The notes: generated from the sequence alone by a model not told the origin. A stretch of 63,008 nt of DNA, filler included, from Octopus bimaculoides (GCF_001194135.2; 5 parts of 5 records of this genome joined end to end with filler, not necessarily neighbours in it), one strand, 5' to 3'. Counted from the whole stretch's first letter, positions 10,704 through 34,310 are shown. Translations and numbers: made by a program.

Positions 10704-10924
10704 NNNNNNNNNNNNNNNNNNNNNNNNNNNNNNNNNNNNNNNNNNNNTTAATTAATTAANNNNNNNNNNNNNNNNNNNNNNNNNNNNNNNNNNNNNNNNN
10801 NNNATATATATATTTATATATATTATATATATAAATTCAAAAAAAAGAAAAAGACAAAAAAACAACAACGTGAGGACGTGATACGGATTGTGTTACTAGA
10901 CGCTCGGGAAAGGAAAGAAAGAGA

Positions 10925-10959
10925 ATTTGACGTTTCGAGCGGAGCTCTTCGTCGGAAAC
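10925..10959 (-). ncRNA. Minimal type I hammerhead-like motif in a Penelope-like terminal fragment (core variant CCGACGA)
   Basis: Minus strand GTTT-CCGACGA-A-GAGC-TCC-GCTC-GAAAC-GTC-AAAT; palindromic ACGT stem III. Confidence 0.55.
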
Positions 10960-11111
10960 AAAGAAAGTCCAAAGAAGGGAAAAACGGAGGAAGAAAAATC
11001 GCCAACGATATCCACGAGGTTACATTATACACATATGTATGTAGGTATGTAGGTACATATGTTTGCATAAAGAACGTAGAATAACATTTGGAAAGGAAAC
11101 CATTTGCTCAC

Positions 11112-11358
11112 CTTTTGGCATGATGATGACTGAATACGAAGAGTGGTGACGGTCGCACACTGTGGAGTTGAATTTATGTTGTCTCTTGGCGAAAATTGTC
11201 AGAGTTATAAGATCATGTTCTGATTTATTCATAACAGATACATAACCAGGATGTCCATGCTTTGCAGATGTTTTGTGGTCGTGGTCGTGGTCATCTTCAT
11301 GGTGGCATTTATTGTGGACGGCAACGTGCATGGTAACCTCGGCACAATGGGCCTTCAC
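11112..11358 (-). CDS. Exon D1 (phase 0 to 1, 247 nt), His-rich copy of the repeated domain: VKAHCAEVTMHVAVHNKCHHEDDHDHDHKTSAKHGHPGYVSVMNKSEHDLITLTIFAKRQHKFNSTVCDRHHSSYSVIIMPK
   Basis: Acceptor ctttactgttttgatcag| and donor AAAG|GTGAGC. Paralogous to 14279-14513, with synonymous third-position changes and only in-frame indels in this frame. Confidence 0.8.
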
Positions 11359-11997
11359 CTGATCAAAACAGTAAAGATGTAACATTAACGGTCACCTCGA
11401 TCATTGGATAGCGATATCATCCCATCAACATACTGTCTGGCCCTTATAATATCCCTTCTATTACCTTCAAGTTTTATACCCCGACGCTGCCCATTGACTT
11501 TCCTGAATTTTCCAATTTTTCTATCTCAATAGAAATCCTTCCTAATTTCTGGGAATACCATTTCTTTAATTCCCTGCAATTACGGATTTATTTCCCACAG
11601 TCCCGAAAATTCAGACAGGATGTGGAGACAATCATCAACGATTCTTCTTCTCCAATATCTTAAATCCTTCTCCCTATTAAAGGATTACTAATATGACTTC
11701 CATAATAAGGTTCATCTGTATCGCATCTGTATCCAAGTTTACAGACCCACCTTACTCTCCTCTCCTCATCACCCATTATGAGATTTCACCCTCACAGGTC
11801 TCCTGTTGACCCTATACACCCGACTCCTTTATTTAAATCAGGCACAAACAGAACAACATTCATATGAATCGGACTAGTTTCAGAAAAGCAACGAGGTCTG
11901 TAGACGTTCAACCAACACCTACCAGCACATAGGACTAATAACATGACAATATAAATAGAAAAGAAACGTAGCTGATGTTTAGGAAAGATCGTCTTAC

Positions 11998-12119
11998 CCA
12001 AATCTTACTTCCTGAGGAATGTGTACTGTTGGTGATTTCCAAAACTTGCTTGTGATTTCGGCTATTCTTGGGAATAATGGTATTAATCAATTTACTGACT
12101 TCAGCAGCAACAGGTTTCG
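11998..12119 (-). CDS. Exon C (phase 1 to 0, 122 nt): (S)KPVAAEVSKLINTIIPKNSRNHKQVLEITNSTHSSGSKIW
   Basis: Acceptor gattttgtttgcag| and donor TGG|GTAAGA. Phases join exon B to exon D1 in frame. Confidence 0.7.
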
Positions 12120-12480
12120 CTGCAAACAAAATCGATCGTTTGTAATGAAGGTACAAAATCACATGCCTCTGTGTGTATGTGTGTGTGTGTGTGCGTGCGT
12201 GCGCGTGTGTTTTTGTATGTATGCGTGTATATATACATTTAATAAAAGAGAGACGGGCAATAGTAAACAGCGTTGAATTATTGAAATACAAGATATACAG
12301 AAGTGAGCATTAATTGTCTGTATTTATTATTGCCTTTAAATGCAGTCCTACGCATGTGATATAAAGAAATATATACACAAACACACATACATACACACAT
12401 ACACACAAATACATACACACATACATACAATACCGAAAGAGAAGGTGATGTTTAGAGGCTAAAGACTCGTAAATACTTAC

Positions 12481-12564
12481 AGTTGTAACATGCAGAGTCG
12501 AGTTGCTTTGCAGTACATGGGCTATGGACATGATTTACAAGGCAAGACGCTTCAAGTCTGGGTG
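12481..12564 (-). CDS. Exon B (phase 1 to 1, 84 nt): (A)PRLEASCLVNHVHSPCTAKQLDSACYN
   Basis: Acceptor ttgtctttctctttcacag| and donor |GTAAGT. Only the phase-1 frame is open; C-x8-C-x8-C. Confidence 0.78.
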
Positions 12565-12789
12565 CTGTGAAAGAGAAAGACAAATGTGAGAACAGGAAGA
12601 GACAGACTTTTTATTGGTAGTGAGCGCCTCTAAACGTGATGATACTTATATAAATATATTGTATTTGTTCAGTTTAGTAGCAGTAGTAGTAGCGGTACTG
12701 CTAGTGCTGGAGGATATAGTCGTGTTGAGGTTGTAATTAGAAGTGTGTTGTCAGTGGGAATGGAACTTCCTAGCCAAACTTTGAAAACT

Positions 12790-13250
12790 AGATTTCTGCC
12801 GGGGTCTCTTTCTATTCACAAGTTCCCCATATAGCATCTGCTTAAGGAACCTTGCTATCCCTCATTCTAATAAGGTGTCCAGTCCAACGTAACCAGTGCT
12901 TGTGCACCATTGCCTCAATACTCAAGATATCAGCTTTCTTCAGGAACTGTGTGTCTGGAGTTTTTAAGGTCCAGCCAACATTCAGAATGTATCTGAGACA
13001 TCTCTGATGAAACGTTCAAGGACCCTTACATATATATTCTTCGCAAGTGGAGGAAAATGTATTCGATAACGTGATAGAGAATAATGCATCATTTTATCAG
13101 ATCCGGATGTCTACCATATTGCGTCATCTTAGATATCCGGTCGCATCATCAGACAAGCAGTTATTTAGGCAATTGAAGACATTCTAAGAGAATGGATCCC
13201 AGTAAAGGCATACAAGAGCTGCATAGTGGGTTTAAAGTGGGTAACTGAAG
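12790..13250 (-). mobile_element. RTE-clade LINE 3' fragment (intronic)
   Basis: Minus translation FHQRCLRYIL...SIEAMVHKHWLRWTGHLIRMRDSKVP/KQMLYGELV. Confidence 0.75.
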
Positions 13251-13347
13251 AGTTCCAGCATTGATGCCTTGTGTGTAGTAAGAACAAAAATCAAAGGGGA
13301 AGCAGTCAGAAGGTAGTCTTGAAAGTTAAACGCTTGTATGTACTTAC

Positions 13348-13431
13348 CTGTAGTACATTTAGACATGGTTTCTGACAAGAAACACTTTCTTTCGTCGTGT
13401 TTTCGATGGCAAACTACTTCGTGTTTGGAGT
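13348..13431 (-). CDS. Exon A (phase 1 to 1, 84 nt): (D)SKHEVVCHRKHDERKCFLSETMSKCTT
   Basis: Acceptor catctttcttttgtacag| and donor ACAG|GTAAGT. Same length, phase and Cys spacing as exon B. Confidence 0.8.
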
Positions 13432-13580
13432 CTGTACAAAAGAAAGATGTAAAACATGGTAGAAAGATTGATGGACGAACAGTTAGAAGGATANNNNNNN
13501 NNNNNNNNNNNNNNNNNNNNNNNNNNNNNNNNNNNNNNNNNNNNNNNNNNNNNNNNNNNNNNNNNNNNNNNNNNNNNNNT

Positions 13581-13730
13581 ATATATGTTTGGGAGAATTT
13601 ACGAAAAAAAAACAACAAACGAAGACAGGCGGTGTAAACAACAAATGGATGTATTAGTATAACGCTCGGGAATAGAGAAAGTCTTTGACGTTTCGAGCCT
13701 ACGCTCTTCAACAGAAAGGAACTCAGAAAG
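13581..13730 (-). mobile_element. Penelope-like terminal repeat fragment with hammerhead-like motif (13683-13718), abutting (TA)n and a gap
   Basis: Minus strand CTTT-CTGTTGA-A-GAGC-GTAG-GCTC-GAAAC-GTC-AAAG. Second copy at 44161-44330. Confidence 0.6.
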
Positions 13731-13744
13731 AAATATATATATAT

Positions 13745-13960
13745 ATATATTCTTTCACTTGTTTCAGTTATTTGACTATGGCCATGCTGGAACACCGTCG
13801 AACAAATCGACCCCAGGACATATTCTTTGTAAGCATAGTACTTATTCTGTAGGTTTCTTTTGCCGAACCGCTTAGTTAAGGGGACGTAGACACACCAACA
13901 TCAGTTGCCAAGCGATAGAGAGAGGAGAAAACCACACACACACAAATATATACATATATG
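13745..13960 (-). mobile_element. SINE family V, 3' half
   Basis: GACTATGGCCATGCTGGAACACC...GCCGAACCGCTTAGTTAAGGGGACGT matches other family V copies. Confidence 0.75.
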
Positions 13961-13983
13961 AATATACATACCACCAAAGATAG

Positions 13984-14014
<31 letters not shown>

Positions 14015-14278
14015 GATAGATAGATAGATAGATGTATTTTATAGATAAGAGTCAAATATTCTCCGTAGAGAATACACTTCGTAGGGCTCAAAGGTTTAAA
14101 GTTGAGCAGGGAGCAGAGTAAATGTAAGGATAAGCAAGTATAGCAACTTGACTAACTTGTTTTTACCTCACATTTAGTCCTACACACGAGCGCGCGCGCG
14201 TGCGAACACGCACACCTATGTATGTAGGTATCCATAGAGAATGTAGAATAACATTTGGAAAGGAAACCATTTGCTCAC

Positions 14279-14513
14279 CTTTTGGCATGATGCTGACAGA
14301 ATAGGATGGATGGTGACAAGCTGTAGAGTTGAGGTTCTGTTGTCTCTTGGCGAAAAGTGTCAGAGTTACATCGTCGTGTTCTGATTTTGTCATAAGAGAT
14401 AGAGCACCTCGATAGCCATCTTTTGCAGATGTCTTGTAGTCGTATCCATCTTCGGTCTGATACTTGTTATGAAAGGAACCATGCATGATAACCTCGGCAC
14501 AATGGGCTGTCAC
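14279..14513 (-). CDS. Exon D2 (phase 0 to 1, 235 nt): VTAHCAEVIMHGSFHNKYQTEDGYDYKTSAKDGYRGALSLMTKSEHDDVTLTLFAKRQQNLNSTACHHPSYSVSIMPK
   Basis: Acceptor ctttgctgttctgatcag| and donor AAAG|GTGAGC. About 65% aa identity to D1 (51/78, hand count). Confidence 0.8.
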
Positions 14514-14544
14514 CTGATCAGAACAGCAAAGATGTGGATTTAAT

Positions 14545-14680
14545 TATTTCTACACAAGGCACAAGTTCTTGAAAATTTGTGGGGAAGGGAGTAGTCGATT
14601 ATATCGACCCCAGGGCATAACTGGTACTTATTTCATCGACCGCGACCGGATGAACGGCGAAGTCGAACACGGTGGAATTT
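14545..14680 (-). mobile_element. SINE family N fragment, present only in the D2 upstream intron
   Basis: CAAGGCACAAG...GTCGATTATATCGACCCCAG...CTGGTACTTATTTCATCGACC; absent from the paralogous intron at 11360-11390. Confidence 0.75.
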
Positions 14681-14780
14681 GAATAGATGTAAAAATAATG
14701 GTCACTTCGGACATTGGATAGCGATATCATCCCTTCAACATACTGTCTGGCCTTGACAATATCCCTTCTATTATCTTCAA

Positions 14781-15170
14781 AGGCGATCTTTTGGTACGAG
14801 TCCTAAATATCGGCCTTTTCCGTAAAAAGTGTCTTCGGCGATCTTTACCAAAGATCGGCCCTTTCTGTAACACCCGCACGATCTTCACTACGGTGTTAGG
14901 GTTAGGGTTTTAGTGTCAGGGTTAGGGTTTTAGGGTTAGGGTTAGTGTTTAGGGTTAGGGTTAGGGTTACGGTTAGGGACGGAATTCCCTAACGCAAACC
15001 CTAAAACCCAAACCCTAACCGTAAACCTAACCCTAACCCTAACTGTAAACCCTTCAAAATAAATCGCGCTCTCTGGATGTCTTTCGCTGTTATGGCGTCG
15101 TTTCCCTGTTTCTTTCCAACACTTTTTACGGAAAAGGCCGATATTTAGGACTCGTACCGAAAGATCGCCC
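14781..15170. mobile_element. 390-bp MITE with ~52-bp TIRs, 5-bp TSD (TTCAA) and internal inverted (TTAGGG)n/(CCCTAA)n arrays
   Basis: TIR (A/G)GGCGATCTTT(T/C)GGTACGAGTCCTAAATATCGGCCTTTTCCGTAAAAAGTGT at 14781-14832 and 15119-15170. TTCAA at 14776-14780 and 15171-15175. The paralogous intron at ~11468-11478 is the empty site. Confidence 0.88.
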
Positions 15171-15819
15171 TTCAAATTTTATACCCCGACGCTGCTCACT
15201 GACTTTACTGAATTTTCCAATTNNNNNNNNNNNNNNNNNNNNNNNNNNNNNNNNNNNNNNNNNNNNTTAATTAATTAANNNNNNNNNNNNNNNNNNNNNN
15301 NNNNNNNNNNNNNNNNNNNNNNATATATCGCTTGAATTGTTTCGACTTATCTAGTATCGACTTCTCACGAGTGGGATACTCAACAACTGGTTCAGGAGCA
15401 ACCGACGGTGCAGATGTGTCTCTTCGGGTGTTAAATAGATATAACTCATTAAAATAACAGTTCCGCAATGTATCTTCTCGGTTCGTGTAAAGAAAAGCAG
15501 CAAATTAAAGAATAAAGTTTCAATAATAAAATAGCATATGCAAAAAAAGAAACGAACACGCAATACAACGAAAACGATATTAATTATCACCGTTAACGGA
15601 TATGGATTTATAAATACACTCGCGTCGGTTGTAAGGCACATGTACATTCGCTCATACAAGCATCCACGAAGATGTAAGCATACGCACACGTGTGGTTTGG
15701 TGCACATACATTCACATAGTGAATAAATAGCTACTTGATATTTATAAGAATGGGGTGATTAGGGCTAAATTTAATTCATCTATACCTTAAGGTGAATTAT
15801 GTTAACAATTACTCAAATT

Positions 15820-33250: not shown

Positions 33251-34310
33251 AACCAATATATATATATATATATATATANNNNNNNNNNNNNNNNNNNNNN
33301 NNNNNNNNNNNNNNNNNNNNNNNNNNNNNNNNNNNNNNNNNNNNNNNNNNNNNNNNNNNNNNNNNNNNNNNNNNNNNNNNNNNNNNNNNNNNNNNNNNNN
33401 NNNNNNNNNNNNNNNNNNNNNNNNNNNNNNNNNNNNNNNNNNNNNNNNNNNNNNNNNNNNNNNNNNNNNNNNNNNNNNNNNNNNNNNNNNNATATACTAT
33501 GTACAAAAATATGACGATGAATTTACCAACAATGTATTGGCTCACGATATAATTCCCTTGTGATGAAGTTGCCAGGTAATAGATTTACAATTGCCCTACG
33601 ATAAAGCTATATTAATATTATCTGAAGTATCCTTCCTTTTTTTAAAGCTACCGAGGTGTGTAGAAAAGTAAAAGTGATTGTAGTAAGATAAAAATCAAGA
33701 ATGAATTATATTTAAATTATCACCTGTTTACTATATACCAAGCAAAAATATATATCTTCCGAACTTGTTTGTAGAATAATGCAATAATATTTATACTGAA
33801 AATGGTTCATGAGTTTAACTACAATACCAAATTAGAGCTATATATATGGAACTTTGTGATTAAATACTTCAGCAGCCCTCAAAATTTTCCAAGATCTTTC
33901 CAATAATAACTTTGACCAGTTTTATGAATTCTTTACCTCTATCACTGAAGGGCATACTTATAAAAAAAACAAAAACAAAAAAAAAACAAGAAAACATTGC
34001 AGCACGCATGACTTTCGGAAATATTTTTACTACGTTCAGAATTGGCGAAGTATAGAATAAACATCACACGTCGGTTTTAATCTGTTAAGATACTGCATCT
34101 TTCAAAAATTCGATACTTCCCGAATTCTTCTACATCACTCCTTACGTGCTTATACCTTTTTGTGTATCTTTTGCTGTTCACTTTTCTGTCTTTTCGTGTT
34201 TTATTCTGTGTACAATGTATGCATTTTGGCTGTATCATTTCCGTCTCTCTTTAGCTGGCTTGTTGCTGCTTTCTATACCCTCTCTTCCGACGAGTATCAG
34301 AGCAAGTGAA

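Follow-up and report, generated by a model that had tools for sequence, protein, structure and literature searches.

A five-exon chain in Octopus bimaculoides as a probable internal segment of a modular gene for a secreted VWA and beta-sandwich protein

The Pif/BMSP matrix proteins of molluscs have as their hallmark a VWA domain combined with chitin-binding domains, and their subfamilies vary in the insert between the two, which in PifCCP, for example, carries Sushi/CCP arrays (PMC11291548). A 2024 survey reported one single-VWA BMSP in Octopus bimaculoides, ObiBMSP, which is Ocbimv22007257m.p (PMC11291548); in the literature that we found, no PPC-like domain is described in Pif/BMSP proteins. 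Here we examine a chain of five minus-strand exons at positions 11112-14513 of a 63,008-nucleotide (nt) stretch of O. bimaculoides DNA, filler included (hereafter the window). We argue that this chain very probably comes from the interior of a long gene whose product is a secreted, glycosylated extracellular matrix (ECM) or adhesion protein and that, as part of the same reading, NCBI has divided the full gene among two or more partial models, including LOC106879812 and LOC106879814. What was known is the annotated gene fragment; what is new is an uncatalogued domain and its family context.

The exon chain and its place in a longer array

The piece analysed spans 10804-15222, read on the minus strand, and its exons were checked mechanically. 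The five exons, GT-AG sites, phases and approximately 257 open codons that an earlier note on this DNA had proposed were all confirmed: the exons measure 235, 84, 84, 122 and 247 nt, each with a pyrimidine-rich tract and AG in front and GT(A/G)AG behind, and the spliced chain of 772 nt gives 257 codons without a stop in phases 0|1|1|1|0|1, the remaining two frames being rich in stops. In the order of the chain, the exons are as follows.

14279..14513, minus strand: exon D2, C-terminal two thirds of a predicted PPC-like beta-sandwich, CAEV type, phase 0 to 1
13348..13431, minus strand: exon A, 28-residue linker module, C-x8-C-x8-C, phase 1 to 1
12481..12564, minus strand: exon B, 28-residue linker module, Cys spacing as in A, phase 1 to 1
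11998..12119, minus strand: exon C, N-terminal third of the predicted beta-sandwich domain, phase 1 to 0
11112..11358, minus strand: exon D1, His-rich D variant (HNKCHHEDDHDHDHK...HGHPG), phase 0 to 1

Exons C and D jointly encode one domain of ~120 amino acids (aa), and exons A and B are homologous linker modules of 28 aa each with the same C-x8-C-x8-C spacing (Cys at positions 8, 17 and 26); the proposed architecture of a domain, two 28-aa Cys modules and a second domain is thus borne out. Exon D2 has 78 open codons, AG/GT sites and the near-invariant Cys pair. Relative to D2, exon D1 carries several Tyr-to-His changes and two 6-nt insertions, and its His-rich loop, HVAVHNKCHHEDDHDHDHKTSAKHGHPG, lies at window 11259-11326. 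The N-glycosylation sequons are present as originally listed, NST in both D exons and in C, and NKS in D1. A Pfam search with A+B returned only Paramecium_SA at E 0.16; an EGF-like or other catalogued Cys-rich module was considered for these linkers and rejected, there being no profile match and three Cys in each rather than six. The repeat unit D+A+B+C, at 525 or 537 nt, is a whole number of codons long and keeps the reading frame. Within the piece, the second copy of the D exon with its intron flanks lies ~3.16 kb from the first, and a tandem array was therefore suspected.

An array with this composition is found in O. sinensis, where the partial protein P0035 (LOC115228461) reads C-D-A-B-C-D-A-B-C-D-A-B-C-D. 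Its 14 modules contain no stop or frameshift, the A-to-B junction was modelled independently three times, and the window's D-A-B-C-D order is included, with a His-rich D followed by another A. The genomic locus of P0035, L002, has all its modules on a single strand, in the order VWA, C, D, B, C, D followed by three A-B-C-D units, with at least five D domains in the array. The VWA sits at 405-794 on that strand, and NCBI has annotated a VWA gene fragment of its own upstream. Colinearity between the window and L002 extends from ~19.6 to 30.7 kb of the latter, from the third to the fourth D exon. The earlier note had described a self-contained five-exon gene; the window instead holds an internal D2-A-B-C-D1 stretch, about one and a half repeat units of a longer array headed by a signal peptide, an N-terminal domain and a VWA.

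Nor is the gene "hidden", as had been supposed, since it is already annotated as XP_014785007.1 (LOC106879814, O. bimaculoides, "uncharacterized"), a model that matches the spliced peptide at 100% identity across 90% of the peptide's length; searches under the locus, RefSeq and UniProt identifiers of the locus and its relatives found no papers. This model shares all four splice junctions with our chain and begins at an in-frame Met in D2, as would be expected if the five exons formed a complete, stand-alone gene for a small secreted protein of ~236-257 aa. We regard such a gene as very unlikely. The Met lies inside the sandwich domain, so that the product loses the exon C strands and the first conserved Cys, and no signal peptide follows it. 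At the 3' end the model splices out of D1 from a cryptic GT that follows 'FNST', gaining just 'RNLL'. Moreover, the ortholog array extends on both sides, with VWA exons upstream on the same strand, and the piece itself is bounded by assembly breaks. XP_014785007.1 is clearly truncated.

A second model, P0023 (XP_014785006.1, LOC106879812), reads signal peptide-N domain-VWA-D-B-C and ends in 'GIKEMVFPEIRNDFY', of which 14 of the 15 residues are encoded by the C-to-D1 intron, at window 11529-11573. Our piece has as its upstream edge the equivalent of the sequence just after this P0023-terminal element. From the accession order, from the intron element that both have in common and from the way the O. 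sinensis locus is laid out, we infer that LOC106879812 and LOC106879814 are probably parts of one gene, of which the window would hold a part of the internal array.

One interruption lies within the chain.

13494..13579, no strand assigned: assembly gap within the D2-to-A intron, 62 nt upstream of the exon A acceptor

Because the gap is intronic and D2 and A are joined by a phase-1 splice, its length cannot alter the frame. On one side, D2 and its flanks align to L002 20365-20736, in a locus that is gapless and contains no N; on the other, the right gap edge is the point at which the L002 alignment restarts (window 13493 = L002 22091), with 90% identity from there through exon A and for 480 nt further. 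The order and orientation of both sides agree with L002. The intron is 847 nt here, counting the N run, versus 1485 nt in O. sinensis, and no module-like coding sequence was found in the orthologous 1485-nt intron of L002. Seven D-to-A protein junctions in relatives are direct, with zero extra residues (P0035, three times; P0003, P0022, P0032 and P0008, once each). The left gap edge is T-rich/(AT)n low-complexity sequence resembling the low end of the piece, and the gap looks typical of an ordinary low-complexity assembly break.

The domain encoded by exons C and D, and its family

An alignment of 20 C+D units, both window copies included (A4), contains two near-invariant Cys, one such Asn and one such Tyr in the D exon, and NxS/T positions conserved in both C and D. 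The C+D units of the window reach hmmsearch domain scores of 114-127 bits. Sequence searches did not connect this domain to a catalogued one: Pfam gave nothing meaningful for the spliced peptide or for C+D1 and no family match for the 20 A4 units, PF04151 (PPC) appearing once, at E 0.22, in 1 of the 20; a search of PDB sequences with a 5-sequence profile gave no matches, and with a 20-sequence profile none below E 0.03, the best being a ~28-residue antibody V-domain motif.

An AlphaFold model built on a 6-sequence alignment (predicted local distance difference test score, pLDDT, 72) gave generic jelly-roll matches in Foldseek, none at E <= 1e-3, and was superseded by a model built on A4 (pLDDT 82.4; predicted template-modelling score, pTM, 0.78), which is an all-beta sandwich with its first strands from exon C. 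The first-ranked Foldseek match of the better model is 1nqj, the collagen-binding domain of ColG collagenase (E 5.7e-4, template-modelling (TM) score ~0.5-0.59), and 1nqd was also returned (TM 0.56-0.59); the best superposition is on 5sv5, the PPC domain of a Bacillus collagenase (TMq 0.61, TMt 0.68, root-mean-square deviation 3.7 A). Further down the ranking are a clostridial enterotoxin, through its receptor-binding C-terminal domain of the same fold, and the jelly-roll domain of Tk-SP. With the best matches of the PPC/collagen-binding class spanning TM 0.51-0.68 and E 5.7e-4 to 4e-3, the predicted fold is suggestive of a nearest relationship to the bacterial PPC and collagenase collagen-binding beta-sandwich. 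A PPC-like beta-sandwich had been one of two earlier guesses, and it is this one that proved to be the best structural neighbour of the modelled domain. As the resemblance is only moderate and the model is a predicted one, we take it to mean that the domain may work like a PPC domain, and not as membership.

The other guess, a C1q/TNF-like fold, or equally an immunoglobulin-like one, we consider most improbable for C+D. A single C1q structure appeared among the weak Foldseek matches of the poorer model (9lkk, E 0.027, TM 0.34), yet the top matches of the better model are mostly PPC, collagen-binding and enterotoxin C-terminal jelly rolls, with no C1q or immunoglobulin structure in the first 50. 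The two Cys lie ~61 residues apart, and sub-threshold profile matches reach the antibody V-domain F-strand motif 'LTISS...YYC'; these matches, however, are non-significant (E 0.03 or worse) and ~28 residues long, and none of the 20 units matches C1q, TNF or immunoglobulin in Pfam.

A possible bridge between the octopod domain and PPC is P0018, a 284-aa hypothetical protein from a 938-nt Joint Genome Institute (JGI) metagenome contig, in which two more PPC-like domain copies ('GDTEMFASLTNSRPSATDYDY...VTVYISVSGYAKNNTFSLRV') occur together with a linker rich in Thr and a hydrophobic tail. Two other candidate relatives were set aside. Bacteroidota type IX secretion system (T9SS)/CHU_C proteins (P0012, P0014, P0016, P0017 and P0019) share only a motif of ~25-28 residues, 'LTL.V..K....S..C...SY', and the resemblance of their repeated ~28-residue motif, 'LTLIVLSKKERKFSATICDGQSY', to the final two D-exon strands was judged coincidental. 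A CUB-like domain was suggested by P0021 (ten CUB domains and a VWA), whose match at E 7e-4 over 46 residues was judged too weak.

The family was collected by an exhaustive profile search and a word-indexed search. Strong-scoring members come from octopods only (O. bimaculoides, O. sinensis, O. vulgaris and Argonauta hians) and are all annotated as uncharacterised, hypothetical or 'collagen alpha-1(XII/XIV)-like'; the word-indexed search with A4 returned a single Argonauta protein and added nothing. Full-length members (P0022, P0032 and P0029) begin with a signal peptide and an N-terminal domain of ~150 aa that Pfam does not recognise; a VWA follows (Pfam E 1e-39 to 1e-86), and then C-D, B, C-D, A, a Ser/Thr stretch and a hydrophobic C-terminus of 14-16 residues that looks like a glycosylphosphatidylinositol (GPI)-attachment signal; in P0025, P0038 and P0007, three CBM_14 chitin-binding domains stand in place of the tail. 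The exon plan is modular, the frame being kept when whole units are added or skipped, and isoforms X1 and X2 of O. sinensis LOC115230178 differ by exactly one 120-aa C+D unit. Two distinguishing features of this family (LOC115228461, LOC115230178 and LOC106879812/14) are present in the window, namely a C+D domain with the Cys pair, Asn, Tyr and sequons and 28-aa C-x8-C-x8-C linkers on separate phase 1-1 exons, the same modules being present in P0022, P0032 and P0035; a third, the upstream signal peptide, N-terminal domain and VWA, is seen at the ortholog locus L002 and in the O. bimaculoides model P0023. The protein to which no family could previously be given is now assigned to an octopod VWA and beta-sandwich family, which lowers its novelty. 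Signal-peptide-like N-termini and C-terminal hydrophobic tails are consistent across relatives, and the conserved sequons and Cys, together with relatives that bear signal peptides, GPI-like tails or chitin-binding domains, make the extracellular location that had been proposed very probable.

In O. bimaculoides, canonical paralogs are arranged head to tail at L003 (CM046627.1, 17,720,855-17,743,913), one module per exon, in the order N domain-VWA-C-D-B-D-A-tail and then the next VWA gene; 9.7 kb of this locus is N even in the chromosome-level assembly. L003, which is the locus of P0008, was considered as the window's own locus and rejected as a paralogous part of the cluster.

A search with P0003 also returned VWA and CBM_14 proteins of Haliotis, Littorina and Nucella (P0040-P0042), with up to 68% query coverage, and the A4 profile detects C+D in the proteins of these three genera at 51.7, 33.0 and 24.1 bits, respectively. 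In all three the domain stands between VWA and CBM_14 and is followed by an A-like Cys linker. The earlier description of a lineage-specific repeat protein holds for the amplified array, which was seen in octopods only, but not for the domain, which these gastropod proteins share. Tentatively, and with slightly more doubt than belief, we propose that C+D is an uncatalogued metazoan domain family, a jelly roll of PPC/collagen-binding type with a Cys pair and glycan sites of its own, and an ancestral and overlooked component of Pif/BMSP-like proteins that was amplified together with the three-Cys linker into long, rapidly evolving arrays in octopods, where some copies gained His-rich loops that may bind metal.

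Conservation, selection and intron content

None of the five exons is interrupted by a stop in the O. sinensis ortholog at L002, where AG/GT is retained, and the frame disruption looked for in a related species was not found. The comparison of each exon with its ortholog, including the ratio of nonsynonymous to synonymous divergence (dN/dS), is given below.

D2, ortholog L002 20434-20667: protein identity 73%, dN/dS 0.44
A, ortholog L002 22153-22236: protein identity 93%, dN/dS 0.14
B: protein identity 82% to the ortholog (82-86% across O. sinensis copies), dN/dS 0.45
C, ortholog L002 27794-27916: protein identity 63%, dN/dS 1.24
D1, ortholog L002 30412-30651: protein identity 70%, dN/dS 0.51

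The ortholog of D1 is also His-rich and is followed in L002 by another A exon. Pooled over the five exons, dN is 0.15, dS 0.30 and dN/dS 0.50, below 1 at p = 6e-4, and between D1 and D2 within the window dN/dS is 0.28. At the level of sequence, these comparisons show the five exons to be real, conserved and, taken together, under purifying selection.

Several observations nevertheless weigh against the interpretation of the window as part of a long functional gene, and some of them would favour decay, in which the exons are relics of a duplicated segment, or open reading frames borne by transposable elements, that gene predictors have strung together. In the orthologous blocks of the window and L002, exons are 84.9% identical and alignable intron 89.2% (p = 0.0055), and between D1 and D2 the exon is 80% identical and the flanking intron 89%; the dN/dS of ~1.2 in exon C, which rests on few sites, points in the same direction, the introns are full of mobile-element debris, and part of the array could be weakly constrained. 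Decay is nonetheless very unlikely, given that there are zero stops or frameshifts in five exons of two species and in the 14 modules of P0035, that splice sites are conserved, that dN/dS is significantly below 1 overall and lowest in exon A, that the Cys pair, the near-invariant Asn and Tyr and the sequons have all been preserved, and that the domain has been conserved since the cephalopod-gastropod split. The remaining points concern the extent and nature of the gene: the adjacency of LOC106879812 and LOC106879814 is inferred rather than read from contiguous O. bimaculoides DNA; all supporting gene models are Gnomon or other automatic predictions; neither the piece nor the 8.6 kb past the L002 array yielded a GPI-like tail, a CBM_14 domain or another A exon; the structural comparison with PPC reaches TM of only 0.5-0.68, with one match at E < 1e-3 and the sequence-level link to PPC absent; and function would be drawn from domain content.

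The surplus divergence is confined to C and D and spares the linkers A and B, and synonymous divergence also exceeds intron divergence. The protein is, by these alignments, fast-evolving, and the rapid divergence of C and D may reflect either positive selection or relaxed constraint.

The introns contain conserved elements as well as mobile DNA.

11529..11573, minus strand: alt-exon-like element (GIKEMVFPEIRKDFY and a stop), in the C-to-D1 intron, in phase after exon C
11359..11517, minus strand: conserved intron stretch upstream of D1, 87-93% identical to the D2 copy versus 80% for the exon
11050..11111, minus strand: conserved intron stretch after the D1 donor (GTGAGCAAATGGTTTCC...), counterpart at 14217-14278, 87% identical
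14782..15169, no strand assigned: miniature inverted-repeat transposable element (MITE), 388 nt, in the intron upstream of D2, not in the gene product
12790..13060, minus strand: degenerate 3' fragment of a long interspersed nuclear element (LINE), in the A-to-B intron ('HWLRWTGHLIRMRDSKVP' and a stop, 'LYGELVNRKRPRQK')

The alt-exon-like element is present upstream of every CAEV-type D exon, with copies in L002 at 12711, 19536, 29721, 30205, 37188 and 37672. Its reading frame is intact in 7/7 copies and its acceptor AG is present in 4/7, its flanks are equally conserved, and NCBI uses it as the final exon of LOC106879812; its status as a true exon is uncertain. In O. sinensis, L002 29721-30412 and 37188-37888 are partial tandem duplications of the alt-like element and the first 10-12 D codons, upstream of two D exons.

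The stretch at 11359-11517 is also conserved in O. sinensis, and its D2 counterpart is split among 14514-14535, 14691-14780 and 15169-15222. An insertion of ~155 nt at 14536-14690 upstream of D2, probably similar to a short interspersed nuclear element (SINE), is absent from the D1 copy, and a 26-nt piece of it recurs at 13797-13822. Downstream of the D donor, the first ~36-60 intron nt are strongly conserved between copies and between species (O. sinensis Dc; L001 13063-13100). Read through, this intron sequence encodes G(E/K)QMVS..NVIL, with which the Gnomon models P0002 and P0005 end, and the stretch may be a splicing element or mark an intron-retention isoform.

The MITE has 57-nt terminal inverted repeats that are 95% complementary, an interior of palindromic TTAGGG/CCCTAA telomere-type repeats, and a 7-bp target-site duplication, TTTGAAG, at 14775-14781 and 15170-15176, with the empty site in the D1 intron near 11470. 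The translation of the LINE fragment contains stops and a frameshift. It is overlapped by an aligned block, window 12947-13493, that shows ~90% conservation in L002 and is found again in the following repeat unit, and the fragment therefore appears older than both the speciation and the duplication of the unit. In the A-to-B intron of L002, a long Thr-coding (ACN)n microsatellite occupies 33544-33960, and the window has a short Ser/Thr-coding remnant in the same place (~12690-12735); these may be a relic of the canonical Ser/Thr stalk after exon A.

Comparison with known matrix proteins

If the gene is organised as we propose, the full protein would run from a signal peptide through a ~150-aa N-terminal domain and a VWA with a DxSxS metal-site motif into a tandem array of ~120-aa beta-sandwich domains (exons C+D), spaced by one or two 28-aa three-Cys linkers that are each encoded on their own phase 1-1 exon. 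The VWA may bind matrix partners through its metal site, and the array of sandwiches and linkers could serve as a disulfide-stabilised, N-glycosylated stalk or as a multivalent ligand-binding region. Pairing of the three-Cys linkers may occur among themselves, A and B together supplying six Cys, or between molecules, and the loop of D1, which is His-rich in the ortholog too, may bind metal ions. Such a protein would act at the cell surface or in a secreted matrix, for example a chitinous or collagenous lining.

For annotation, the practical consequence is that a single long gene has probably been cut up in each of the two species, into the partial models LOC106879812 and LOC106879814 in O. bimaculoides and into two models in O. 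sinensis, and the A4 profile would permit re-annotation of the whole tandem gene cluster. More generally, Pfam lacks the conserved domain of ~120 aa that is common to cephalopod and gastropod VWA/chitin-binding proteins. In work on Pif/BMSP, what lies between VWA and chitin-binding domains is regarded as a variable "insert", and a folded, conserved domain at this position would be a new candidate for matrix or ligand binding; if the domain is indeed ancestral, it would be a ligand-binding part of the molluscan matrix toolkit that octopods re-used after the loss of the shell. None of this overturns current understanding, and we regard the finding as useful but moderate.

Among described domains, the PPC and collagenase collagen-binding domains offer the nearest structural comparison: like them, the octopus domain is predicted to form a jelly-roll beta-sandwich of ~115-120 residues, and like the bacterial modules it is an accessory part of a secreted protein with several domains. 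The octopus domain differs in being metazoan, in being split over two exons, in having its own conserved Cys pair and N-glycosylation sequons, and in the lack of significant sequence similarity to PF04151 in the Pfam and PDB sequence searches. Matrilins and FACIT collagens provide a second comparison, since the VWA domains of the paralogs match matrilin-4 at ~31-35% identity and two paralogs have been automatically named 'collagen alpha-1(XII)/(XIV) chain-like'. This resemblance is confined to the VWA, which is outside the window, and the octopod relatives lack the collagen triple-helix, fibronectin type III, EGF and coiled-coil domains.

The closest relatives are the octopod paralogs P0022 (O. 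vulgaris CAI9741715.1) and P0032 (O. bimaculoides A0A0L8HVA9), which have the window's modules and exon plan. In these canonical paralogs, exon A precedes the Ser/Thr stalk and GPI-like tail, whereas in the window A is internal and is followed by B-C-D again, giving an iterated A-B-C-D arrangement; the window gene also has one D copy with a His-rich loop.

With Pif/BMSP proteins the octopod family shares secretion and an N-terminal VWA, and the octopod proteins P0025, P0038 and P0007 and the gastropod proteins P0040-P0042 extend the likeness to the combination of VWA, C+D domain and CBM_14. CBM_14-like sequence was not found in the piece, L001 and L002 (tblastn) or in the spliced peptide (Pfam), the 3' end of the gene lying outside the sequence covered, and a laminin-G-like region was not found in the window, L001 or L002; because the known sequence of the gene holds neither CBM_14 nor laminin-G, we place it outside Pif/BMSP membership. 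Nor is a shell-matrix role implied, since octopuses have no external shell. The octopod insert, composed of predicted PPC-like sandwiches and three-Cys linkers amplified at least fivefold, is not described in the Pif/BMSP literature that we found; the Sushi/CCP insert arrays of PifCCP are a parallel to it. The best reading of the available sequence is that the window gene would be an octopod offshoot of a Pif/BMSP-like lineage rather than a member of Pif/BMSP itself.

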